Part shown: one piece after another, positions 4,088 through 23,017 of the stretch
Numbering within the stretch: position 1 is the stretch's first letter
How the letters are laid out: every line of letters starts with the position of its first letter
Origin: Paramicrosporidium saccamoebae KSL3
Taxonomy: Eukaryota > Fungi > Cryptomycota
Assembly: GCA_002794465.1 (NCBI GenBank)
Contig: MTSL01000179.1
Location: forward strand, 5,205-37,204
Direction: 5' to 3'
Length of the DNA: 32,000 nt
Notes under the pieces: generated by a model
Databases searched by the model: none
Told to the model about the DNA's origin: nothing
What the model saw: only the letters and a program-made list of their open reading frames with translations
Program-made: the position numbers and the translations under genes

Positions 4088-4613
4088 CCTGTGGGATGGG
4101 TGCCTTGGTGGATAGGGCCTCAAGAAGATATTTTCGGATCCCCTGTCGACGTCAGTGGTACGGACCTTGTAAAGGACCAGGTGGGAACGATGAGTCACAG
4201 GCAACCATCAGTGTGTTGCATTATTGAAATGATACCACAGGCAAGAAGAGGACTTGTGTATCACTAGCCCAATATTCATTTGTGCTATAGTATCAATGTC
4301 ATAAGGAGACTAGATTAGAACCGCATCATTTCCACTGTAGTTTTTATAACTGATCCATTATAAACAAGGATTGTGTTGCTGAATTCACAACCTCACTAAA
4401 ACAATCTTTAAATCCTTGTTATTTTCTATCGCGCGCGTCTTTGCATCAATATCTATTTTTGCGTCTTTCTATAATCGTTTTTGCCCACCCACCCCGCACA
4501 AAATCGCATTAAAAATCTTGGTACATTTATTTGCACTCACAGTTTTCTTGGAACAGGTTTGGATTAGTGTGAATGTTTGCTCTTCATGCACCAACGGAAA
4601 ACCCTGGTTTCAC

Positions 4614-5150
4614 ATGCTAAAGCCCATCAAGGAAATCCTCTATAATCCCCGCCTGCAATATCGGACGTATGTATACCCCATTACGGAAGGTCTAAGGTGT
4701 ATCCTCCCAACATCTGCTACACATTGCAATTACGGTCTTTCATTGCTGTCGCAATTGCCTCCCACGCCCAAAGACAGTGGTATCTTTGCGTGGTCGCCCA
4801 CAACAGATCCCACAGCCTCCTCCGCTAGCTGTATCGAGCAACCGGCCTTTATCAGTCTGTTCCAGGAGACGCTTCGCAACGCCCATCCACAACTACGCTA
4901 CTTGCTCTCGTCCAGGGCAAAACGCCAGGATGGGTGGATTCCGCTGGTAGATGAGCGCGCGCCAGTTGGGTGGGGACGGGTCGCAGAGAGCGACGACACC
5001 ATTGGAATGTGTAGAGTGCAGGATGGCGAGGTGCTTGTGGATACCTTTGAGGTGATGCCGACCTACAGGCTAATTTCTCGACTGGGAATATTCTCCCTCC
5101 CAAGGCCCCTACATGCACTCATCCTGGATAAGCTAAATACAACCTTGTGA
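4614..5150 (+). CDS. Conserved fungal-type hypothetical protein
   Basis: First ATG at 4614; the ORF-track TTG extension is AT-rich and intergenic-like. The motif series GWIPLVDERAP..GRV...DDTIGM..V..G......VMPTYRLI...G.F.L resembles an uncharacterised fungal family I cannot name. Confidence 0.65.
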   Translation: MLKPIKEILYNPRLQYRTYVYPITEGLRCILPTSATHCNYGLSLLSQLPPTPKDSGIFAWSPTTDPTASSASCIEQPAFISLFQETLRNAHPQLRYLLSSRAKRQDGWIPLVDERAPVGWGRVAESDDTIGMCRVQDGEVLVDTFEVMPTYRLISRLGIFSLPRPLHALILDKLNTTL

Positions 5151-5384: not shown

Positions 5385-5517
5385 TATAATTATATACTAA
5401 GACGCATTTTATAGATTGCTACCCTCGACACTAGATTATGGAACGACCTTTTAAATTGTAACCACCAATTATCAGCGGGTACTCACAGATGCTTAACCCA
5501 ACACTCACTTGCCGGGG

Positions 5518-6765
5518 ATGCTAATGAAATTCGTAATATGCCTTGCTCTGTGTGGGGCAGTCTTGGGTAGTATCCAAAACCCAGTAGGCCTTAGAAATAT
5601 GGGAAACACATGCTACATAGCGTCAGTGCTCCAGCCACTCTTTCACGCCCCCTCTTTCCGTACCTCCGTCTTTTCGCATGCCTCTGACAGTACGCCGCAT
5701 GCAACCCTCTGCTCGCTCTTCTACCGACTGGCGGCTGGAGACAAAGCACCGGAGATGGACATTGATTTTTTACCGGCAGCAGACGTGGCCGGAAAGAAAC
5801 TATTTCAGGTTGGACGGGGTGATGATGCACAGGCCTTTTACCAATGGCTGACGGCTCATCTATCATGGACAAATGATCTCTTCAAGATAGAGTGGGAAGA
5901 GACCACCACTTGCAACGATATTCTGATTTCCAAGATAGTTGCTTCTGATACAGTCACTATCGGACAGGTCGTGAAGGACGTGCCAGTACACGAGATGCTT
6001 CGTGAAAGCGTGGAGGATGGCGTGAAAGGGTATAAAGTAGTAAAGAAGGACTTTACTGAAGCTCAGTGGGACGACTTGATGGAGAGGGGGGTTCCTGCAG
6101 AGGGACTGACTGGAGAGACACAGACCAGCATCACTCGTCGTGTTATCAATACTCCACCAATGATTGTCCTCCTTGCACACAAGTTTGCGAATACCCAAAC
6201 TCGAAAAGGAGATAAAATTGAGTATCACCAAACTTGGGACGGAACGAAATCTACCACCTTTAGCGAAACGTTTGTCCTGAATGGAGTAACCTACTACCTG
6301 CACGCCGTGACTGTCTATGTGAACAGTCGACGGAATGTGACCAATGTTAAACAAAGCCACCATTACAAAGCATACGTATGCATTGACCACAACACGAACC
6401 GTTGGTTCGAGTTTAATGATTCCGCTGCAACGCCTTCGAGCATTGCTAACATTGGTGATAATGGCTTCATGTTCTACTATGTTCGGGAAGACACTCGACA
6501 GGAATGGATAGACCTTGGCGCATTCGATATAAAATCAATCCCGAGTATGTACAGCGTTCTGGGACAGACGATGAATGCGCTTGTTGATGGACTTTCGATG
6601 CTGCTAGAGATGACGGGACTAGAACTACCCTCAACAAAACAGATAGTGAAGCTCGCTGCTGTCCCTGAGGAGGCTAAAGGTGTTCTAATCAAAGCTGATG
6701 ATGCACTTGACCGTGTTGAACACGATGAGAATAATGCAGAAACTGTTACTGATAACAAACAATAA
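5518..6765 (+). CDS. Putative secreted ubiquitin-specific protease (peptidase C19/USP fold), paralog 1
   Basis: Signal-peptide-like MKFVICLALCGAVLG; Cys box GLRNMGNTCYIASVLQPL; His box HHYKAY...WFEFNDS. Start is ATG 5518 or 5524. Confidence 0.8.
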   Translation: MLMKFVICLALCGAVLGSIQNPVGLRNMGNTCYIASVLQPLFHAPSFRTSVFSHASDSTPHATLCSLFYRLAAGDKAPEMDIDFLPAADVAGKKLFQVGRGDDAQAFYQWLTAHLSWTNDLFKIEWEETTTCNDILISKIVASDTVTIGQVVKDVPVHEMLRESVEDGVKGYKVVKKDFTEAQWDDLMERGVPAEGLTGETQTSITRRVINTPPMIVLLAHKFANTQTRKGDKIEYHQTWDGTKSTTFSETFVLNGVTYYLHAVTVYVNSRRNVTNVKQSHHYKAYVCIDHNTNRWFEFNDSAATPSSIANIGDNGFMFYYVREDTRQEWIDLGAFDIKSIPSMYSVLGQTMNALVDGLSMLLEMTGLELPSTKQIVKLAAVPEEAKGVLIKADDALDRVEHDENNAETVTDNKQ

Positions 6766-7190: not shown

Positions 7191-8432
7191 ATGTGGCTTT
7201 CGGTCGGTATTCTAATTGCCGCACTTATCACCCTCTCCCATGGCGCCGAGTCCAAGCAGCACAGCTCGGTGGGTCTTGTGAACAAGGGAAACAACTGCTA
7301 CATTTCAGCCATCCTACAGGCCCTTTACCATTTGCCTTCTGTGCGCGAGGCTGTGGTGCGTCAAAAGTCCAACTCTATTGTTCATACCACGTTGGCATCG
7401 CTATTCGCCCGTATGACGATGGGTACCTCGGCACAGGAAATGGACGCTGACTTTTTGGAGGCAGTGGATAGGACGAGCAAGGGATTCATTGGCTTGGCTC
7501 ACGAAGACGATCCTCATGCCTTCTTCAGCTATCTTCTGGGTCAGCACCTGCCCTGGGTCAATAACGACCAGATGATGTTTGACGTGGAGGAAACTATGGT
7601 CTATCAAGATGTCACGCTCACCACCCGGATAGCAAGGGAGAACATTCTCATTAATCACGTTTTGAGAGATCCCGCCATGCCAGTGCATTACGGGCTGGAG
7701 GAAACAATCGACGAAAATTTCGCGTTCAGCTTAACCGTAGCTGAGTGCATTAGCCTGTTTGGATCCGATTCATGTTCCTCTGATCCTCCCATCTCTCATT
7801 CTGACAGTGGAAGCGTTTCCGACCCGATGACCCTCCCTGTAACCCGCATAAGACGAGTCATCAGTACGCCCCCCATTCTCGTAATGCTGGGTGACAAGTT
7901 TAAGATGAATACTCCGCCGAACCAGCAGAACCAAAGTCGCCAAACAATGGCATTTGCGTCTAACTCGGGCAGACATTGGGATGCCTCCACCCAGACCCTC
8001 TATGATCGTGCCTTTGAGTTCCTAGGGAAGCGCTATTACCTCTATAGCACCGTCATTTACAAGCCGGGAGACGGGCTTGTCAAAGACCATTTTTTCACGC
8101 ATAGCTGTATTAATGCCGCCGAGAACCGCTGGGGCCTTTTTGACGATGGCATTGTCAAGCCTTCTGTTGAAACCTACGATCTGGGCAACAATCCGTTCAT
8201 GTTCTTTTACGTAGAAGAATCTCTCGTACAGCAATGGACGCAGATGCCGCCATTTACTGTGGATCAGATTGCTCTCCGGTATCGCTTTTTGGGACAGCTT
8301 TTTCAGTCTTTGGTGGATAGTGTCCATCTGATGATGCGTCTAACTGACGCGCCTTTCCCTAAACCAAGGGCCCCTATTGAATTTACCCCCCTCAAAGATG
8401 AGATAGTTGGCGCGTTGATTGAGGACGAATAA
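7191..8432 (+). CDS. Putative secreted ubiquitin-specific protease (peptidase C19/USP fold), paralog 2
   Basis: Signal-peptide-like MWLSVGILIAALITLSHG; Cys box GLVNKGNNCYISAILQAL; His box DHFFTH...WGLFDDG. Shares with paralog 1 a C-terminal extension (W..L/M..F....I...Y..LGQ....LVD.....T....P). Confidence 0.8.
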   Translation: MWLSVGILIAALITLSHGAESKQHSSVGLVNKGNNCYISAILQALYHLPSVREAVVRQKSNSIVHTTLASLFARMTMGTSAQEMDADFLEAVDRTSKGFIGLAHEDDPHAFFSYLLGQHLPWVNNDQMMFDVEETMVYQDVTLTTRIARENILINHVLRDPAMPVHYGLEETIDENFAFSLTVAECISLFGSDSCSSDPPISHSDSGSVSDPMTLPVTRIRRVISTPPILVMLGDKFKMNTPPNQQNQSRQTMAFASNSGRHWDASTQTLYDRAFEFLGKRYYLYSTVIYKPGDGLVKDHFFTHSCINAAENRWGLFDDGIVKPSVETYDLGNNPFMFFYVEESLVQQWTQMPPFTVDQIALRYRFLGQLFQSLVDSVHLMMRLTDAPFPKPRAPIEFTPLKDEIVGALIEDE

Positions 8433-8934: not shown

Positions 8935-9731
8935 TTAATTATCAGGATCATCTGTTGATTGCTTTCCGGCCCACAATATGTAACGAGTCAACACATTGGC
9001 AAGCGACTTGATCACTACGACTGCCTCGTTGGCTAGTAAAACAATTCTAGAATTCTGACCAAGCTCGCCTTCCTCAGTGAATCTGCCAGGCAACGATAAC
9101 AGAAACGTTTTTAAAGCTTGCTGACCGGGCAGAGGGAGGACATATCCATTATTGTTGACGAGATCAACAACATTCCTAAGTGTCTGAACAACTTCCTTGG
9201 CAACGACTTCCCGGAGGTGCTGCACTCTAGCCATTGCCTGCACCTCTCTCGCTTGGACCGATTCACTCCATGTCTCCAGTCGCTCAGACACTCCTTCCTG
9301 GGCTCCTGCTACCGCGTTTCGCAGCCTCCCCAACAAAAAGTCAATATATGTTTCTGCATTATTTAGTCCCTGCAGAGTTCCTTCCATTTTGCGACGCATC
9401 TCAGCGGTGGGGACATAGGCGTTTTCAAGTCGTTCCAACTGGCGTCCAGCATAGCCATCGATGGTCTTTAGTTGTGGCTCAAAAGTTTCAGTGACCAAAC
9501 GCATTGAATATTCCACAGTACTGGCCCCCATTTGTACCAGACGGGAGCTGTCTTTTCCAGAGGCGTACACACGGGACAAGTGGTCCAAAGTCGAGGTGAC
9601 TAGTGCATATTCTGATAGTCTGCCAACTAGACCCGCAGAAACACCAGTGTCGGGAGCCACACTGGTCTCAGTCGCCTCGACTGATACCATGACCATCAAT
9701 ACCACCTACCCCGTCCACCCCCACAGGACAT
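8935..9731 (-). CDS. OPI1: Opi1-family transcriptional repressor (compact; probable 29-nt intron 9681-9709 after a 22-nt first exon)
   Basis: N-terminal block YASGKDSSRLVQMGASTVE...IDGYAGRQLERL and C-terminal block EVVQTLRNVVDLV...LP...KTFLLSLPGRF...RIVLLANEA match both conserved Opi1 regions. GTAGGT..TCAG intron puts ATG 9731 in frame; alternative ATGs lie at 9696 and 9690. Confidence 0.75.
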
Positions 9732-9736
9732 TGGAG

Positions 9737-9758
9737 CATGTGAAAATGGAATCACATG
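9737..9758. promoter_or_regulatory. Inverted pair of CATGTG E-boxes including a perfect ICRE/UAS-INO consensus upstream of OPI1
   Basis: CATGTGAAAA (9737-9746) equals TTTTCACATG on the minus strand, a 10/10 match to WYTTCAYRTG. A second TCACATG at 9752-9758 forms a 7-bp inverted repeat with an 8-nt spacer. Confidence 0.5.
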
Positions 9759-9984
9759 ATTTAACAATTATTTTAATAAAATATTATGTAAAAAGTACCC
9801 GTCCAATATTAATAGTCCCAATCCAGATATCCACCCCAACAAGCTAGATTTGCCCGAGGGTGGCCACCTATTAATGCGCGAGAATATTTATTTCTTAGAA
9901 GCGTCTTGATAGGCCACCGTCCTCATCTCCGCACACTAGTTATAGGATAACTATCAGGATTACCCTCACTACGCAACAGTTTAA

Positions 9985-10036: not shown

Positions 10037-11483
10037 TTATCTTTGCGGGATCTCCAAATCAACCACCGCCCCGCGAGTAATCTTTCCCCACCCAATCAGA
10101 CGCCAATGGTTGTCGATACGTCGACTAAGGGCAATCTTTTCGCCAATCTCTGTGCAGGTGGGCTTGTTGAGGAGGATTTTGGCCATGTCGCCTTTGACAG
10201 CAAGCACTTTGCCGCCTGTGCAGGTGGAGCCAATATTGACCATGAGCGTCTCAGCTTTGGCAAGACGCTGCACCTTGAGATCTTCTCGAGTGTCTGCCCG
10301 CACTCCGAGGAGACGACGGAGGAGGAAATAATTAATCTCCACTTCGGAGTAGACGGGCGGCAGATGACCCACGGCTCCCAACACTTGACCAACAAGACGA
10401 TCGGCACGACAAAGAGTCGGATCAATCTTTGTGCCCACTCCAATCAAACCGCCAGGCACTGCAAAGGGAAGGTCATTGGCCTCGGCAAATAGAGAAACGA
10501 CGCGGGTAAAGATGGGACGACATACTGATTTTCCCTCCTCATTCTTCACAATAATACCCGGCCGCACTTCCACCTCATCACCAATCTTGAGCACTCCACA
10601 GAGGATACTGCCACCGGCAACTCCGCCCTTTAGATCCTGCACCTCGGAACCCGGCTTGTTGACGTCAAAGGAGCGGATCACAATCATCTTGGGCGGCACC
10701 GAGAAATCGCGTGGCGGTACGGGAATCTTCTTGACAATATACTCACAAACGGCGTCAATGTTGTACTTTAGCTGTCCCGAAATGGGAATAATGGGCGCAG
10801 ACTCGGCAGCTGTGCCACGGACAAAATCTGTAATGTTCTTGTGCTGCTCTTCAGCCACCGTTTCTCGCACCAAATCAATCTTGTTCTGCAAAATGAGAAT
10901 ATTCTTCAACTTCATAATCTCGACGGCGGCCAAATGTTCCGAAGTCTGTGGCTGTGGACAGGGCTCGTTGGCAGCGATCAGCAAAAGTGCGGCATCCATT
11001 ACCGCAGCGCCGTTCAACATGGTGGCCATCAGAATATCGTGGCCAGGGCAATCCACAAAGGAAATGTGTCTGCAATGTCAAGTATCAAGGACTGAGCGCT
11101 TACCTTAGCAATTGCATGCTGCCCCCACAGCCAGAACGCTCGCAGGGAAACGTCACCGGCTTGTCGCTTTTGTACGACCGATAGCATCCCGGACGGGGAC
11201 ACGCATTATTGTCACACTTGTAAATCTTGGCATTTGCATATCCAAGTTTGATGGTGATATTCCTCTCCAGTTCGTTCTTGAAACGCACCGTCTGAACACC
11301 CGAAATTGCCTTTACCACCGTAGACTTTCCATGGGCTACATGGCCAATAGTTCCTACAAGTTTAATAGTCACAGACGTCCATGTACCGATATTAATGGTG
11401 GCCTGGCGTTGGATAACTTCTGGCGAGAGGGCCGTCAGTTCATTGAGGTTCACCGAGGCGAGGGAGGAGGAGAGACTGTCCAT
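10037..11483 (-). CDS. GCD11: Translation initiation factor eIF2 gamma subunit; introns 11354-11386 (33 nt) and 11070-11103 (34 nt)
   Basis: QATINIG|[54 protein letters not shown] and HWRLIGWG are diagnostic. Both introns are GT-AG and restore the canonical sequence. Confidence 0.97.
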
Positions 11484-11668
11484 GGAATTTGGCAGTTCTG
11501 GACAAAACTTGAGCAGCCGGGGGTAGTCAAAGACGGAGGCTGTCAGTGGGGCAGTCTGCTTATTCACAGTACAGAATCCTTAAGGGCTCTGACACTACTG
11601 ATTGGTCAATATCGATCCCGGTTATATAGTATCCCGGTCGACTAAAGCAACCTTTCCTCAGTCGGTGA

Positions 11669-13547: not shown

Positions 13548-13727
13548 TCATTGAGATCTCTTTAGATTTTCTTCAAGATTTCGCACAGCCTCCTCCCGTC
13601 GCCTTGTCAAAATGTCGCGTCGGCACATGAAAAATAGTACAGCACCGCTGCCCAACATTATTGCCCTACAGGTCATTGCACTGTGTATCAAATACCAAGG
13701 GATAAAAACTTCTTTCGGAGAAGACAT
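13548..13727 (-). CDS. Microprotein absent from the ORF track (49 aa spliced via 30-nt intron 13666-13695; 59 aa unspliced); DUF4748-like single-helix protein
   Basis: ATG 13727 to TGA 13548. Splicing GTATTT..AATGAC.CTGTAG gives MSSPKEVFIPWAIMLGSGAVLFFMCRRDILTRRREEAVRNLEENLKRSQ. Confidence 0.55.
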   Translation of the reverse strand: MSSPKEVFIPWYLIHSAMTCRAIMLGSGAVLFFMCRRDILTRRREEAVRNLEENLKRSQ

Positions 13728-13862: not shown

Positions 13863-15692
13863 ATGGGACGCAAGCGCGCCCGCTCTTCCGGCAAAGAAAA
13901 AGTGTCCGATTCATTACCAAATGATACTGTGATTGATACGGAGACTCTCGCCGGCGTGGAGGAGCCATTGTTGGCTGGCACAGAAGGGCGCAAGACTTAC
14001 AAACACCCATACACTGTTGCTGGCGTGGAAGAGTATGGAACTCGCAAACACTCGCGCACACTCTCTGGAGTCGAGGAACCATTGCTGGTTGGTGCAGAAG
14101 AACACAAGGCTCGCAAATATCCGTACACGATATTCTTTATTATTGGCAATGAGTTTTGCGAGCGTTTCTCCTTCTACGGCATGAAGGCCATCCTCCCCAT
14201 CTATCTCACTTCCTACCTCGGGTTTCACGAATCCCACGCGACCACCATCATCCACACATTCAATTTCAGCGCCTACTTCTTTTCCCTTTTCGGAGGCATT
14301 CTCAGTGACAATTGGTTGGGAAAGTTCAAGACAATTCTGTACCTGTCCCTGGTGTATTGTGTGGGAAATGCAGTCATGTCAGTAACGGCGCTGCCTGGCG
14401 TTACGGGTATACCGCCTAATTGGTGGGGGATGGCGTTGGGGCTTTTGTTAATTGGAATCGGAACGGGCGGCATTAAGCCTTGCGTGGCATCATTCGGGGG
14501 AGACCAGTTTGAGCCGCATCAGAGCAAGGAATTGTCAGTGTTCTTTGCCGTATTCTACTTTGCCATCAATGCGGGATCAATGTTGTCCATGTTCCTGACG
14601 CCGCTACTTCGCAACAATGTCCACTGTTTTGGACAGCAGAGCTGCTATCCATTGGCATTTGGAGTACCAGCGGTGCTAATGTTTGTCGCATTGGTCGTAT
14701 TTGTGGCAGGGAGTGCATTGTACAAAAAGGAGCCGTCACGAAATAACGTCGTACTAATGTTTTTCTCTCTTCTTGGCACCGCTATTTTCAGAAAAATCAA
14801 GTCCATCTTTAAGAGTAATGATGACCGACACTACCCTTACTGGCTCTACTGCGCAGCTGACAAGTATGAGGCATCATTCATTGAAGATGCTCGCCGAGTG
14901 CTGACAGTGTTTCTTGTGTTTTCTCCAGTCTGTTTCTTCTGGGCGCTGTACGATCAGCAAGGATCCTGGTGGGTCTATCAAGCCGTCATGATGAAGAACA
15001 AGATGCACATTGCAGGTTGGAATGTGACCATCCTCCCAGAACAGATGGGACTATCCAATGCTGTGCTCATTTTAGTTCTCATTCCCGTGTTCAGCAAATT
15101 CCTGTACCCAAGCTTTGATCGAATAGGCAGGCCGATTAAGGCACTTTATCGGATTGGCTTGGGAATGGGCTTGGCCCTTGTCTCTTTCGTAATGGCAGCA
15201 ATCCTACAGTTTATAATAGTCGCACGCGGAACCTTTGATGTATCGCCCACCGATCCCACTGTGCAAGTATGTGTCTCGGGATGCGTCAACATTTTTTGGC
15301 AGCTCCCACAGTACTTTATCATCACGTGTGCCGAAGTCTTTCTCTCCGTCACAGGACTCGAGTTTGCCTACTCGCAAGCCCCCGCCAGCATGAAATCTGT
15401 TTGTCAGGCCGGCTGGCTACTCACTGTTGCTGGTGGAAATCTGATTGTAATTATTGTGACCCTAATCGATCCAATTAGCTGGTTCGGTCCTAAAAATGCA
15501 ATGGCCTGGAACTTCTGTCTCTGGACCGTCATTATGGCAGCCGGGACCTTTATCTTCGCCGGTCTGGCCTGTGGATACAAGTATCGGGAGGATGCAAACG
15601 AAACTGGTAGGGAGGAAGAGTACCTACCACTGGCGGCCACCAACTCCCAATTGAGTATCCAGTCAGATACTCCGTTAATTGTAAAAAAATAG
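13863..15692 (+). CDS. PTR2: Proton-dependent oligopeptide transporter (POT/PTR, SLC15A1/PepT-like)
   Basis: EFCERFSFYGMK (ExxERF), GTGGIKPCV, FGGDQF, FYFAINAGS and GLEFAYSQAPASMKSVCQAGWLL motifs; about 12 hydrophobic segments; intronless. Confidence 0.93.
   Translation: MGRKRARSSGKEKVSDSLPNDTVIDTETLAGVEEPLLAGTEGRKTYKHPYTVAGVEEYGTRKHSRTLSGVEEPLLVGAEEHKARKYPYTIFFIIGNEFCERFSFYGMKAILPIYLTSYLGFHESHATTIIHTFNFSAYFFSLFGGILSDNWLGKFKTILYLSLVYCVGNAVMSVTALPGVTGIPPNWWGMALGLLLIGIGTGGIKPCVASFGGDQFEPHQSKELSVFFAVFYFAINAGSMLSMFLTPLLRNNVHCFGQQSCYPLAFGVPAVLMFVALVVFVAGSALYKKEPSRNNVVLMFFSLLGTAIFRKIKSIFKSNDDRHYPYWLYCAADKYEASFIEDARRVLTVFLVFSPVCFFWALYDQQGSWWVYQAVMMKNKMHIAGWNVTILPEQMGLSNAVLILVLIPVFSKFLYPSFDRIGRPIKALYRIGLGMGLALVSFVMAAILQFIIVARGTFDVSPTDPTVQVCVSGCVNIFWQLPQYFIITCAEVFLSVTGLEFAYSQAPASMKSVCQAGWLLTVAGGNLIVIIVTLIDPISWFGPKNAMAWNFCLWTVIMAAGTFIFAGLACGYKYREDANETGREEEYLPLAATNSQLSIQSDTPLIVKK
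13944..14126 (+). repeat. Coding imperfect tandem repeat in the transporter N-terminus (23 aa + 15 aa + 23 aa)
   Basis: TLAGVEEPLLAGTEGRKTYKHPY / TVAGVEEYGTRKHSR / TLSGVEEPLLVGAEEHKARKYPY. Confidence 0.85.
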
Positions 15693-15727: not shown

Positions 15728-16132
15728 CTAATGTTTATGATTTCCTAAGAGGCCTTGCCGAACAGCCTCTCTTAGACGCTCATTCTCCCTCCTCAGTCCC
15801 TCAATGGACTCGTTGGCCATGCCCAGTAGTCGTGCCTGGCTACATCTTCCTGCACCCACCAGTTCCGCCATCCGAGCCAGCTCGTCTTTTATCTTCCCGC
15901 GACGCTTGTGTTCACTAGCGACGTGTCGCTCGCGGCGTTCTTGTTCGTCCAGACGCGGTGTAAGTGTACAGAGAAACTTTTCAATATAATCCAACTCCCG
16001 GAGGTCGAGTAAACGCGGTCCCTCTGCAGTGTGGTGTGGCATGGTCGCTGATGGCGCATCTATAGTAGGCAGTTCAGCTAAAAGAGAACCGTTAAAGCCG
16101 CAGAGATCCGTAATAGGACCGTCATCCGGCAT
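15728..16132 (-). CDS. Small bHLH transcription factor, Ino2-like (with putative Opi1-interaction motif)
   Basis: Basic region RRERHVASEHKRR (H-E-R class-B E-box signature), then helix-loop-helix and short zipper ANESIEGLRRENERL. Upstream LLDLRELDYIEKFLCTL resembles the Ino2 repressor-interaction domain. Confidence 0.8.
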   Translation of the reverse strand: MPDDGPITDLCGFNGSLLAELPTIDAPSATMPHHTAEGPRLLDLRELDYIEKFLCTLTPRLDEQERRERHVASEHKRRGKIKDELARMAELVGAGRCSQARLLGMANESIEGLRRENERLREAVRQGLLGNHKH

Positions 16133-19493: not shown

Positions 19494-19700
19494 CTATGGT
19501 GTTGGCATAGTGAACTGGTCCTGAAAGGCATGAGAATGACAATTATGGTGATAAATGATTTGCGAATCGCCTGTACCGCACTGGGTAAAAAGTCGACTCG
19601 CAATTGTCAAAAGTTCAGCCGCCTCTGGACCCTCGTAATCCCCTATATACTCTTCTGTATCTCGGATCTTCAGATCAGTCAAGCTGCACAATTGCCACAT
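19494..19700 (-). CDS. Possible small hypothetical gene divergent from SKI2 (may be spliced)
   Basis: 68-aa ATG ORF with protein-like composition; candidate GTACAG donors could extend it to about 86 aa; no recognisable domain. Confidence 0.3.
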   Translation of the reverse strand: MWQLCSLTDLKIRDTEEYIGDYEGPEAAELLTIASRLFTQCGTGDSQIIYHHNCHSHAFQDQFTMPTP

Positions 19701-19732
19701 GGTTAAAGATTAATGAAAGAAATCTTTTCATA

Positions 19733-22700
19733 ATGGAGGAACATTTGAAGAAACGCTTCTCTGACTGTACGTATGACGAGGCCACAGTAGATGTGCTGCC
19801 GATAATTCCAGGGAAAGATATAGAGATGATTTGGAATGAAAAGCTCAATGACTGGCCACCGTATAAATCGACTGAAAGCTGCATGGTATTAGAACCGCTC
19901 TTCGACCTCCTGACTGGGGAACTATACGATTTCAACGTCGAGGTAGCAGACGAAAAGGTGGTGAAGGAGGAGGATGGATTTCTGACTGTTCCACCAGGAC
20001 TGCCGAGGGGAATGATGTTTGAGAAGCCAGTGGGTTTTCGCGACCATGTCATCACATCATTGGCAAAGACGATTGGCGAAAAGCTGGCTCTTGAAGGCGC
20101 CGGTGAAGAGATTGGTGAAGAGACGTCCTCTAATGTTGAGGGGACGCCTTCTGCTGTTGACGAGCTGCTCCCCACTGTCACTGAGCTATTCACTCGCACA
20201 AAAAGGCCTAAAACTGAGGGTATGTGGGCCTATGCCTTGAATGCAAGCCATGTCCCTTTGGACTACGAGTCGGTGGTGGCCGAACCGGCATTTTCCTTTC
20301 CCTTTGAACTGGATGCATTCCAGAAACAGGCCGTTTATCATTTAGAACGCGGTGAATCAGTATTTGTGGCAGCGCACACTTCTGCTGGAAAGACGGTTGT
20401 CGCAGAGTATGCTATAGCCTTGGCAAGGCGACATATGACTAAAGCCATCTATACCTCACCCATAAAGGCGCTTTCTAACCAAAAGTTCCGCGATTTTCGA
20501 GAAACCTTTGACGAGGTTGGGTTATTGACAGGCGATGTACAGATCAATGCAGAGGCAAGTTGTGTAATAATGACAACAGAGATTCTTCGCTCGATGCTGT
20601 ATCGTGGCGCCGACATGATCAGCGACGTCGAGTTTGTCATTTTTGATGAAGTACACTATGTAAACGATCAAGAACGTGGTGTGGTCTGGGAAGAAGTAAT
20701 AATCATGCTACCGCCCCACGTCACCATTATCATGTTGTCAGCAACGATCCCCAACACGCTAGAATTTGCCGATTGGGTCGGAAGAACCAGGAAAAAGGAG
20801 ATATTCGTGATCAGCACTTTGAAACGGCCAGTGCCGTTGGAACATTATTTGTATGTGGACAAGGGAGAAGTGGTCAAGGTGGTGGACCAGACGAGAACAT
20901 TCCTTGAGCCAGGCTATAAAAAGGCGCTTCAGGTGCAAAAGGGAGACAAAAAACTGGCTTCAGGCGCGTCCCATGGAGGGCTGAATCGTGGATTCAAACA
21001 GGAAAAGAATCTCTGGACCGATATAGTGTACATGTTGAAGAAAAAGACTTTACTTCCAGCCGTCATGTTTACATTTTCAAAACGCAAATGCGAAGAAAAT
21101 GCAGACGGGATCATCAACTTGGATCTCCATTCAGCCTCAGAAAAGAGTGCGGTGCACGTGTTCTTGGAGGGATCAGTAAACAAGTTGAAAGCTGAAGATC
21201 GAACTCTTCCACAAATTAGCAGAATGCGAGAAATGCTTTCTCGAGGGATTGCTGTCCATCACAGCGGACTGTTGCCAATCATAAAGGAGGCGGTGGAGAT
21301 TCTCTTCTCAAGAGGACTAGTCAAGGTCCTATTTGCGACCGAGACATTTGCCATGGGTGTGAATATGCCAGCGAGGACGGTGGTCTTTTCCAGCATTAGG
21401 AAGCACGATGGAACTGGGTTTAGGACGCTGCTTCCCGGCGAGTATACGCAAATGGCAGGAAGGGCTGGACGACGTGGACTGGACGAGACTGGAACCGTCA
21501 TCATCACTTGTCCCGAAGAAGTTCCCGGGGAAGCGACGCTGAGGACAATGATCCTGGGTCAACCCACAAAACTGACTAGCCAGTTCCGATTGACGTACTC
21601 CATGCTACTCAATTTGCTAAGGGTGGAAGCGCTGCGGGTGGAAGAAATGATCAAAAGGAGTTTCAGCGAGAATACCAACCAAAGAGAACTGCCACAGGAC
21701 GAAAAGCAATTGGCAGAGAGTGAGAAATTATTGGAAAAGGCTGAAAATCTGAATTGTAGAATTTGTGAGGCAGACATGTCCGAGTTTTACTCCACCAGTA
21801 TGACTATCCTGGACAATGGGAGATTCATATTTGAAAAAATGTTGATGGACGTTAAAATGAGCAATAGACTTGCAGAACCAGGCAGGATTATAGTTGTCAA
21901 CAATGGACTGTTAAGGAATATCCCAGTAGTCGTGCTTAGACTGATACCGACACGGAACGGGCTATCGCTGTCCTGTTTGGCCCTTTGGAACGAGACTTGC
22001 ATGGGAGAGTTGCTCCCGTTGCCAACAAATATGATTACCTGGCCCGATACGGCAAGACCGCTACAGAGGGATACGTTCCAGTTTGGACCGTGTGAGATGG
22101 TAATGATTACAAGCTCAAAAATCAAAGTGCCATCTGATCTAGGGAATACTTCCCAGTATCGCGCCAAAGATCTTGATGAGATTCAAGATTATTTTATGGA
22201 ATGGCTCAAACAAGGTAAATCGAGGGAATTGGAAGAACTAGAGATTCCACATTTTAAATCGATAGATGTGGATGAGCGGAAATTGATTCGATCAGAGCTT
22301 TTAAAGACGCTTCCTCTTTTCTCGTGCCGGAAGTGTCCCGAATTGATGGATCATTATGAGATTTATCACCGACGACGACTGCTGACAGAGAGATTAGCTG
22401 AACTGCAATTCCGTCTTTCTGACAATAGTTTGGCCTTACTACCCGAATACCATGCGCGTCTGGCCCTACTCAAGACCCTCGGCTATGTGGACCAGGCTGG
22501 AAATGTGCAACTAAAGGGCAGGGTGGCCTGCGAGCTGAATACTGTAGATGAGCTAATCACGACCGAGTTGCTCTTTGATAATGCATTCTCCGCCCTGCAG
22601 CCTGCAGAAATTGTAGCGCTGCTCTCAGCCATGGTGTTTCAAGATCGTCATGCCAGCGAGCCAAAACTTGGCGGGGCGCTCCTTGACGGTTACACACGAC

Positions 22701-23017
22701 TCCAAACAATGGCCATACGTCTTTCCACTCAACAGATGGAACATGGCCTTCCCGGAGGCTTGGTAGAGAAGCTTCGGCCGGGTCTAATTGAAGTGGTATA
22801 TCAATGGGCCCTCGGCATCCGCTTCACTGCAATTACAGAACTGACTGATGTGTTGGAGGGGTCAATTGTGCGGTGTATTGTCCGCTTGGACGAGACGTGT
22901 AGAGAGATTCGTGGAGCTGCAAGGATCATGGGTGACACGTTGCTGTATAAAAAGATGGAAGAGGCGTCTATGCTTATCAAACGAGACATTTGTTTTGCCT
23001 CCAGTTTGTACATTTAA
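19733..23017 (+). CDS. SKI2: Ski2 DExH-box RNA helicase (cytoplasmic exosome cofactor)
   Basis: FELDAFQKQA, AHTSAGKT, DEVH, SAT, HSGLLP, QMAGRAGRRG and the C-terminal DSHCT region ending KRDICFASSLY. First ATG is 19733; the ORF track starts at TTG 19604. Confidence 0.93.
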   Translation: MEEHLKKRFSDCTYDEATVDVLPIIPGKDIEMIWNEKLNDWPPYKSTESCMVLEPLFDLLTGELYDFNVEVADEKVVKEEDGFLTVPPGLPRGMMFEKPVGFRDHVITSLAKTIGEKLALEGAGEEIGEETSSNVEGTPSAVDELLPTVTELFTRTKRPKTEGMWAYALNASHVPLDYESVVAEPAFSFPFELDAFQKQAVYHLERGESVFVAAHTSAGKTVVAEYAIALARRHMTKAIYTSPIKALSNQKFRDFRETFDEVGLLTGDVQINAEASCVIMTTEILRSMLYRGADMISDVEFVIFDEVHYVNDQERGVVWEEVIIMLPPHVTIIMLSATIPNTLEFADWVGRTRKKEIFVISTLKRPVPLEHYLYVDKGEVVKVVDQTRTFLEPGYKKALQVQKGDKKLASGASHGGLNRGFKQEKNLWTDIVYMLKKKTLLPAVMFTFSKRKCEENADGIINLDLHSASEKSAVHVFLEGSVNKLKAEDRTLPQISRMREMLSRGIAVHHSGLLPIIKEAVEILFSRGLVKVLFATETFAMGVNMPARTVVFSSIRKHDGTGFRTLLPGEYTQMAGRAGRRGLDETGTVIITCPEEVPGEATLRTMILGQPTKLTSQFRLTYSMLLNLLRVEALRVEEMIKRSFSENTNQRELPQDEKQLAESEKLLEKAENLNCRICEADMSEFYSTSMTILDNGRFIFEKMLMDVKMSNRLAEPGRIIVVNNGLLRNIPVVVLRLIPTRNGLSLSCLALWNETCMGELLPLPTNMITWPDTARPLQRDTFQFGPCEMVMITSSKIKVPSDLGNTSQYRAKDLDEIQDYFMEWLKQGKSRELEELEIPHFKSIDVDERKLIRSELLKTLPLFSCRKCPELMDHYEIYHRRRLLTERLAELQFRLSDNSLALLPEYHARLALLKTLGYVDQAGNVQLKGRVACELNTVDELITTELLFDNAFSALQPAEIVALLSAMVFQDRHASEPKLGGALLDGYTRLQTMAIRLSTQQMEHGLPGGLVEKLRPGLIEVVYQWALGIRFTAITELTDVLEGSIVRCIVRLDETCREIRGAARIMGDTLLYKKMEEASMLIKRDICFASSLYI

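Follow-up and report, generated by a model that had tools for sequence, protein, structure and literature searches.

A conserved E-box upstream of an Opi1-family gene in Paramicrosporidium saccamoebae: a candidate bHLH control site

Is the gene for an Opi1-family protein of Paramicrosporidium saccamoebae driven by the very activator that its product might repress? The question is raised by a 32,000-nt stretch of contig MTSL01000179.1 (hereafter, the window), in which a minus-strand Opi1-family gene is preceded by two closely spaced E-boxes and a small basic helix-loop-helix (bHLH) protein is encoded 6 kb away. The Opi1/Ino2/Ino4 circuit is the classic case of membrane-lipid sensing by a transcription factor, and it is usually seen as an invention of budding yeasts that has been rewired even in Candida and Yarrowia. 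P. saccamoebae is an intranuclear parasite of amoebae and belongs to the Rozellomycota; its assembly (GCA_002794465.1) comprises 7.28 Mb (GC content 46.9%), in which 3750 genes have been modelled, and the P. saccamoebae genome paper is silent on lipids and transcription factors. In a preliminary description of the locus, the two E-boxes had been labelled a palindromic pair of inositol/choline-responsive elements (ICRE, also known as UAS-INO) and placed in a candidate conserved negative feedback loop. Judged by comparison of orthologous promoters, the E-box is under selection in eight independent lineages and thus functions in gene control; as the circuit around it we favor the feedback loop, which is unproven.

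The E-box and its conservation in orthologous promoters

On the plus strand, positions 9733-9761 of the window read ggagCATGTGAAAAtggaaTCACATGattt. The stretch at 9737-9746, CATGTGAAAA, reads TTTTCACATG on the minus strand and matches the yeast ICRE consensus WYTTCAYRTG at 10/10 positions; if the next base (C) is added, the longer consensus WYTTCAYRTGS is matched at 11/11. This site, E-box B (TTTTCACATGC), is accompanied by a second copy of TCACATG at 9752-9758. The latter lies in E-box A, which matches the yeast consensus in the TCAYRTG core only. The two sequences form a 7-bp inverted repeat, 8 nt apart, and the paired sites are found 41-62 nt upstream of ATG 9696 (Table 1). The preliminary description was accurate in this geometry and also in the distances that separate position 9737 from ATG 9731 (5 nt) and from ATG 9696 (40 nt). 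ATG 9731, however, is out of frame with the gene and opens an 11-codon upstream open reading frame (uORF), the TGA of which overlaps the main ATG (TGATG).

At the scale of the window, enrichment was detected neither for WYTTCAYRTG (2 occurrences against 1.51 expected, with at least 2 found in 43/100 shuffles) nor for TCACATG (5 occurrences against 7.1 expected). An expectation of about 0.002 ICRE matches within 60 bp of this start had been calculated beforehand. The arithmetic is right, but the figure was obtained after the site had been seen, and significance comes from conservation in orthologous promoters only.

Orthologues were gathered in steps. A single-sequence homologue search yielded 3 matches, and an alignment query made of three sequences then gave eight relatives with 40-80% identity, each of which comes from a metagenome or from an assembly without annotation. 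An exhaustive profile search added closer and more distant relatives, and the DNA around the orthologues was then compared. A scan of metagenome loci with the protein alignment provided 0 confirmed relatives. The P. saccamoebae protein itself occurs once in public data, on contig MTSL01000179.1.

An unbiased word count was carried out on the 150 bp that precede the gene in each of eight independent lineages; locus L003 was excluded because its promoter can be aligned with that of L004. The top-ranked 8-mer was ATCACATG, present in 8/8 promoters. When 2000 dinucleotide-preserving shuffles were used as null, the best sharing of any 8-mer was 5/8, reached once, and 4/8 was reached four times. In the 150 bp that follow the stop codons of these genes, the best 8-mer was common to 2/8 regions only. 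A smaller promoter set was also analyzed, and ATCACATG was found in 7/7. Regions upstream of the gene for eIF2-gamma proved to be a flawed control, since the called starts fell inside coding sequence, and the downstream regions were used instead.

The same E-box was detected near the start codon in every orthologue with available upstream sequence (Table 1). The form found at site B, ATCACATGCT, is present in L004, L007, L008 and L014, and L003 carries TCACATGCT at -47..-39, the same offset as site B of the window. In other lineages a single site is found: the form of site A, ATCATGTGATT, is the only one in L009 and in L013, and AATCACATGATTT is the only one in L011. The orthologous proteins are 40-55% identical; their promoters are otherwise unalignable, and the order of elements differs between lineages. 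Because neutral DNA is saturated at such protein divergence, and because element order varies, sharing of the E-box must reflect selection rather than persistence of unaltered ancestral sequence. Conservation in orthologous promoters, the check that the preliminary description had called for, is thus strongly positive.

Table 1. Features of the window and E-boxes of orthologous promoters. Window features are given in window coordinates; promoter sites are given on the gene strand, by the position of the core relative to the ATG.
Feature	Position	Strand	Description
E-box B	9735..9746	-	Gene strand TTTTCACATGCT; core CACATG at -46 from ATG 9696
E-box A	9750..9761	-	Gene strand AATCATGTGATT; core CATGTG at -62; symmetric TCA..TGA flanks
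CCAATC (CCAAT box)	9818..9823	+	About 126 nt upstream of ATG 9696, antisense to the gene
Opi1-family gene	8935..9696	-	253 aa from ATG 9696, 251 aa from ATG 9690
Candidate uORF	9696..9731	-	Out of frame, 11 codons, MSCGGGRGRWY*; between E-box B and main start
eIF2-gamma gene	10037..11567	-	Upstream neighbor of Opi1-family gene; one short intron (~11057-11099, two ORFs)
Small bHLH gene	15728..16132	-	134 aa; candidate E-box factor; found by tblastn with bHLH proteins from orthologous loci
Window promoter	-62, -46		AAATCATGTGATTC, TTTTCACATGCTCC
L003 promoter	-94, -46		ATCATATGAAAA, TTATCACATGCTTT
L004 promoter	-109, -61		ATCATATGAAAA, TTATCACATGCTTT
L007 promoter	-90, -64		GTGTCATGTGCTTC, AAATCACATGCTTT
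L008 promoter	about -60		AAATCACATGCTTT; from corrected start ATG 1366; two more E-boxes upstream
L009 promoter	-52		ATATCATGTGATTC
L011 promoter	-105		CAATCACATGATTT
L013 promoter	-45		CTATCATGTGATTT
L014 promoter	-112, -84		GATCATATGATTT, TTATCACATGCTAT

A second element accompanies the E-box. The hexamer CCAATC is found in 7/8 independent promoters, a degree of sharing that no 6-mer attained in 2000 shuffles (0/2000). Its co-conservation suggests a composite CCAAT + E-box promoter, of which a CCAAT-binding complex is probably part. Promoters that carry CCAATC include those of the window, L004, L009, L011, L013 and L014.

To which gene does the E-box belong? Its distance to the Opi1-family ATG is kept within narrow bounds (45-105 nt), and its distance to the stop codon of the neighboring eIF2-gamma gene ranges from 122 to 551 nt. 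Furthermore, in L008 a bHLH gene lies upstream in place of eIF2-gamma, and the site is still kept (~-60). On account of both observations, the Opi1-family gene, rather than the gene next to it, is taken as the one that the element serves. Nor is TCACATG a general promoter word, since 9/18 of its occurrences in 66 kb of DNA from the clade are found in Opi1-family promoters. E-boxes were also seen near a 412-aa gene in L004 and a 384-aa gene in L013; these were set aside, as no homology connects the 412-aa gene with the 384-aa gene and the former has an orthologue in the window that lacks the site.

The architecture of the element is informative. The core is found both ways round relative to the gene, as CACATG or as CATGTG, and therefore a protein that reads double-stranded DNA is indicated, not an RNA signal or a directional initiator. 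At the primary site, one CAC half is always combined with one CAT half, and neither CACGTG nor CATATG is ever found; the flanks are roughly symmetric (ATCA..TGAT). An asymmetric core of this kind would fit selection for a heterodimer, or else a factor with the tolerance of Myc/Max or MITF. The form conserved in the clade is WWATCACATGMT, with WWATCACATGMTWT as consensus. The yeast consensus is satisfied at site B, but the WYTT flank is not conserved in the clade: the orthologues carry TTATCACATG, AAATCACATG and CAATCACATG, which match the 11-mer consensus at 10/11 positions at most, and a full 10/10 match is peculiar to P. saccamoebae. The notion of a palindromic pair as the conserved unit did not survive the comparison either. 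Promoters hold between one and three copies, with centers 16-48 nt apart, and because of this variability the hairpin or palindrome was rejected as functional unit.

Two further hits, the only others in the window, were noticed. One is TTTTCATGTGC (13623-13633, minus strand), which again agrees with WYTTCAYRTGS at 11/11 positions and precedes the gene of a PTR2-type peptide transporter (13863-15692) by about 230 nt; unlike the conserved sites, it carries G and not T beside the CAC half, and 1-2 such matches are expected by chance. The other is TTTCACATGCT (4607-4618, plus strand), with 11 nt identical to E-box B. An orphan ORF (4614-5150; 178 aa, without a Pfam match) has its first ATG inside this motif. 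The preliminary description had mentioned the site at 4607-4616 as a possible further target. The sole point in favor is the 11-nt identity to site B; with no independent support, no family match for the ORF and the first ATG inside the motif, this candidate was dropped.

The Opi1-family protein and the linked bHLH

Identification of the gene as OPI1 was right at the family level. The protein scores 55.2 bits with Pfam Opi1 (PF08618), well over the cut-off of 29.7, and the exhaustive profile search detected 381 relatives at E <= 0.001. Most of these are 400-900 aa long and match in two blocks split by an insert; named examples belong to Synchytrium ('Transcription factor Opi1'), Hyaloraphidium, Homolaphlyctis and Amoeboaphelidium. 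PF08618 is also the precomputed annotation of 8/8 metagenomic orthologues, six of which gave 32-55 bits when rescanned. When the P. saccamoebae protein was scanned in pieces, residues 23-96 aligned with positions 3-81 of the Opi1 profile and also with positions 8-89 of Perilipin (the PAT region), and residues 102-210 aligned with positions 220-322 of Opi1. The Perilipin match reached 24 bits, below its cut-off of 33. The gene encodes a minimal member of the Opi1 family, with a PAT-like N-terminus followed by a putative helical bundle.

The Opi1 family is a repressor family defined by an array of leucine zipper (LZ), uncharacterized conserved region (UCR) and activator-interacting domain (AID), of which UCR and AID occupy residues 220-256 and 321-379 in yeast Opi1 (PMC10709064). 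Relevant observations on this array are as follows:

(i). The UCR is clearly present within residues 102-210. An hhalign comparison also placed residues 162-205 on residues 216-260 of yeast Opi1 (E = 0.0018); the yeast sequence used was unverified, and the alignment should be taken as a lead only.

(ii). A candidate zipper helix spans residues 96-137 (pLDDT 68-84). Among orthologues L109 and E113 are conserved and N111 and A112 mostly so; no significant alignment to the yeast LZ was obtained.

(iii). A C-terminal helix (residues 212-245, SRxVLLANEAVVxIKSL), a plausible counterpart of the AID, is conserved among orthologues.

(iv). The FFAT motif (EFFDAxE), by which S. cerevisiae Opi1 binds Scs2/VAP, is absent: the 251-aa sequence contains neither an FF dipeptide nor an acidic FFAT-like tract.

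With regard to the antiparallel four-helix-bundle fold, the AlphaFold2 model is all-helical and of low confidence (mean pLDDT 57.7, pTM 0.51). A Foldseek comparison with the PDB gave no significant match, only generic helical bundles and ABC transporters, and a sequence search of the PDB with the Opi1-family profile gave nothing meaningful.

In early-diverging relatives, the PAT match (PF03036, ~4-114) does exceed the cut-off of 33: it reaches 71.6 bits in P0024 (Amoeboaphelidium KAI3629710.1), 43.9 in P0026, 43.1 in P0027 (Synchytrium) and 44.9 in P0036 (Homolaphlyctis). All four also have an Opi1 domain. Residues 21-91 of the P. saccamoebae protein give the same PAT match below the cut-off. 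These observations hint at a lipid-binding head common to the Opi1 family and the perilipins, and at how lipid-droplet and repressor families may relate.

Regarding the bHLH partner postulated in the preliminary description, a bHLH gene does exist in the window and is syntenic in relatives. In L004 (5311-5796) and L011 (2998-3612) it is the next gene downstream, convergent with the Opi1-family gene, and in L008 (450-1100) it is the next gene upstream. A word-based homologue search found unnamed metagenomic relatives only, and the family has nine members, all of them metagenomic. The general bHLH profile (PF00010) matches 9/9 members, the window copy with 18.1 bits against a cut-off of 20.7. 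The basic region reads RHVASEHKRR, with His5, Glu9 and Arg13, and bHLH proteins of the His5-Glu9-Arg13 class read CACGTG or CATGTG. The family also shares an acidic-hydrophobic N-terminal motif, LLDLRELDYIEKFL, a candidate for an activation or repressor-docking motif.

The partner could not be placed specifically with Ino2/Ino4. A shared HVxSE.KRR had pointed to an Ino4-like identity and was rejected as specific evidence, because Max, run as control, scored higher. For the same reason, we do not call the bHLH an orthologue of Ino2 or Ino4. Max is also its best match among solved structures (PDB).

As to the layout of the locus, the ORF of the Opi1-family gene extends over 8935-9705, with ATG 9696 and ATG 9690 both in frame; the public gene model uses 9690. 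The eIF2-gamma gene ends at 10037, which leaves at most 340 bp for the Opi1-family promoter. The same upstream neighbor is found in L004, L009, L011, L013 and L014, hence in six lineages including the window. ATGs also occur past the E-box and ahead of the called start in L003, L004, L007, L009 and L014, in frame in L007 and L009. Upstream ATGs in several orthologues make the start codons and the 5' leaders of Opi1-family genes uncertain. Two tandem paralogous genes for ubiquitin C-terminal hydrolases (UCH; 5509-6765 and 7191-8432, plus strand) take the place that the bHLH gene and an MTR4-like helicase occupy in relatives; the helicase of the window is at 19604-23017, and the region has therefore been rearranged. 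Other recognizable genes of the window, besides the UCH protease pair, eIF2-gamma, the PTR2-type transporter and the helicase, encode two kinases, a 2-oxoacid dehydrogenase E2, an otubain, a CPSF-A/DDB1-like protein and a ribulose-phosphate epimerase. No lipid-synthesis gene is recognizable in the window. A scan of the intergenic region for bacterial-type promoters and terminators was discarded as irrelevant in a eukaryote. On the L003 contig (orthologue P0003), degenerate short repeats (GATTC/GGTTC/GATTT) were noticed at 1-110, and a TG-rich tract is found 3' of the gene (1200-1260).

A candidate circuit and its alternatives

The functional unit would be the TCACATG E-box, in one to three copies placed 45-105 nt before the start and usually with CCAATC nearby. 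A dimeric bHLH of class B would bind the E-boxes in this short promoter, which would then determine how strongly the Opi1-family gene is transcribed. The best candidate for the factor would be the 134-aa bHLH encoded at 15728-16132, whose counterparts directly adjoin the gene in three lineages. Should the Opi1-family protein bind and inhibit this bHLH, negative feedback would ensue: the activator would drive its own lipid-sensing repressor.

Our confidence differs from step to step. That a bHLH binds the sites is quite probable. That this bHLH is the 134-aa protein is a possibility that we place somewhat short of an even chance. That the Opi1-family protein represses it, thereby closing the loop, is a more tentative step, which we infer by analogy with the systems discussed below. 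For the reading as a whole, namely a bHLH-type transcriptional control site with a feedback loop as favored circuit, the chances appear evenly balanced.

Several observations weigh against this reading. On the side of the activator, bHLH_INO2 matches 8/9 and bHLH_INO4 5/9 members of the bHLH family, in all cases under the cut-offs, and in hhalign comparisons (with unverified sequences of both) the probability was 95.9 for Max (E = 6e-9) and 87.7 for Ino4 (E = 3e-6). In four lineages the promoter of the bHLH gene lacks a CAYRTG E-box, in contrast to yeast INO2, which is autoregulated. The strict asymmetry of the core would suit a heterodimer, yet neither the window nor the sampled loci contain a second bHLH. 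On the side of the putative repressor, only the UCR aligns: the Ino2-contacting AID of Opi1 could not be aligned by Pfam or by hhalign. For upstream activating sequences, the sites are also unusually near the start codon; in L009 the E-box is followed by an in-frame ATG after no more than 11 nt. Lastly, no CAYRTG E-box exists in the 520 nt upstream of two more distant Opi1-family genes, that of P0026 (L015) and that of Amoeboaphelidium (L017). At L015 the upstream neighbor is only 62 nt away from the gene, and the eIF2-gamma neighbor is missing at both loci. Conservation of the element is therefore bounded to the clade related to Paramicrosporidium, and its likeness to the UAS-INO of yeast OPI1 could be convergent.

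The alternative that best withstands the evidence keeps the E-box as a genuine activator site and assigns it to another bHLH or bHLH-zipper protein with its gene elsewhere in the genome, for example one of the Cbf1/USF, SREBP/Sre1 or Myc/Max type. The Opi1-family protein would then be mainly a PAT/perilipin-like protein of lipid droplets or membranes, one lipid-related target among others, and no loop would exist. We consider this scenario possible, if clearly less probable than a control site with the favored loop. E-boxes of the TCAYRTGA type are bound by many bHLH-zipper factors, the bHLH of the window is a generic class B protein, and a co-conserved CCAAT box is typical of composite promoters. 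The PAT match of the N-terminus, over the Pfam cut-off in early-diverging fungal relatives, and the AID that escapes detection point in the same direction, as does the precedent of Aspergillus oryzae LdrA, an Opi1-domain protein that regulates lipid droplets. Against a mere lipid-droplet protein, the UCR block is well conserved, and the family is defined as one of repressors (PMC10709064). Near-confinement of the motif to one promoter in 66 kb is a poor fit for a general housekeeping factor, and linkage between the bHLH gene and the Opi1-family gene has been maintained through rearrangements. Should an unrelated factor read the E-box, the element would be an ordinary conserved promoter motif.

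An unlikely alternative is that the motif acts as a core-promoter, initiator or 5'-leader element, which either fixes the transcription start or operates in the mRNA, possibly together with a uORF. The short distance to the called start codon, an AT-rich, TATA-like tract upstream of the E-boxes of the window, and the upstream ATGs or uORFs that follow the E-box in several lineages would be accounted for in this way. The presence of the core in both orientations is contrary to an RNA element or a directional initiator, however; copy number and spacing vary; and the E-box itself holds an ATG, which would become an extra upstream start codon if transcribed. A chance match without function, for which the lack of window-wide enrichment and the post hoc probability might be invoked, is effectively refuted by the word count (8/8 against 5/8 once in shuffles and 2/8 downstream) and can be regarded as highly improbable.

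If a bHLH control site with feedback is the correct reading, a known kind of circuit would operate in an unexpected, deep-branching lineage. A conserved E-box with a CCAAT box and an adjoining bHLH gene near the base of the fungi bears on the age of the coupling between repressor and bHLH and on the autoregulation of the repressor. A speculative extension, to which we attach little probability, is that the lipid-sensing circuit of Opi1 and bHLH is older than the divergence of Rozellomycota from other fungi, and that the repressor gene was already activated by the E-box factor which its product inhibits; that Opi1 began as a perilipin-like, lipid-binding PAT-domain protein and was later recruited to repress a bHLH; and that the clade of Paramicrosporidium retained linked repressor and activator genes in minimal form (a 251-aa Opi1 and a 134-aa bHLH). 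Proteins of such small size would also be convenient for structural and biochemical work.

Comparison with known systems

Myc/Max and MITF/TFE proteins bind non-canonical E-boxes such as CATGTG and the M-box TCATGTG. The flank symmetry of these sites (TCAYRTGA) is also seen in the promoters analyzed here, and, among solved structures and the sequences compared, the bHLH of the window aligns best with Max. It differs in that a comparable leucine-zipper extension is missing and in that the lineage is fungal; hence, orthology is not claimed. The perilipins offer a second parallel outside the Opi1 literature. The N-terminal 70 residues of the P. saccamoebae protein match Perilipin 8-89, and relatives from aphelids and chytrids pass the cut-off; the C-terminal two thirds, in contrast, are of the Opi1 type and do not show the 11-mer repeats and four-helix bundle of perilipins.

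Among fungal circuits, a close parallel is the autoregulation of OPI1 in Saccharomyces cerevisiae, with activation by Ino2/Ino4 and repression by Opi1. The UAS-INO of the yeast OPI1 promoter, a premise of the preliminary description, is documented in the literature, as is repression of the promoter by Opi1 itself (PMC6122994). The yeast and Paramicrosporidium elements share an asymmetric CACATG core, a T before CAC and a location upstream of an Opi1-family gene, and site B of the window matches WYTTCAYRTGS at 11/11 positions. There are also differences. The conserved flank is WWATCACATGMT and not WYTT; the sites are 45-105 nt from the ATG, with CCAATC co-conserved; the Opi1-family protein is a 251-aa minimal form that lacks the FFAT motif, the poly-Q and the long N-terminus of yeast Opi1; and the candidate partner bHLH is not demonstrably an orthologue of Ino2 or Ino4.

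In Yarrowia lipolytica, the Opi1-family protein Yas3 binds the bHLH protein Yas2 (PMC9925530), and the circuit formed by Yas1/Yas2 (both bHLH) and Yas3 acts on the E-box-containing element ARE1, serving targets other than INO1 (PMC9925530, PMC4300220). In P. saccamoebae, an Opi1-family protein would likewise be paired with a bHLH that acts on an E-box element.

Aspergillus niger provides another precedent outside budding yeasts. Its bHLH 'ino2' (An02g04350) is a small protein whose homodimer recognizes E-boxes and which interacts with the Opi1 homologue as well (PMC6962311), so that a single bHLH does both jobs. The sites of A. niger are of the CASSTG type; those of the Paramicrosporidium clade are strictly CAC/CAT, a composition that better fits a heterodimer or a tolerance like that of Myc/Max or MITF.

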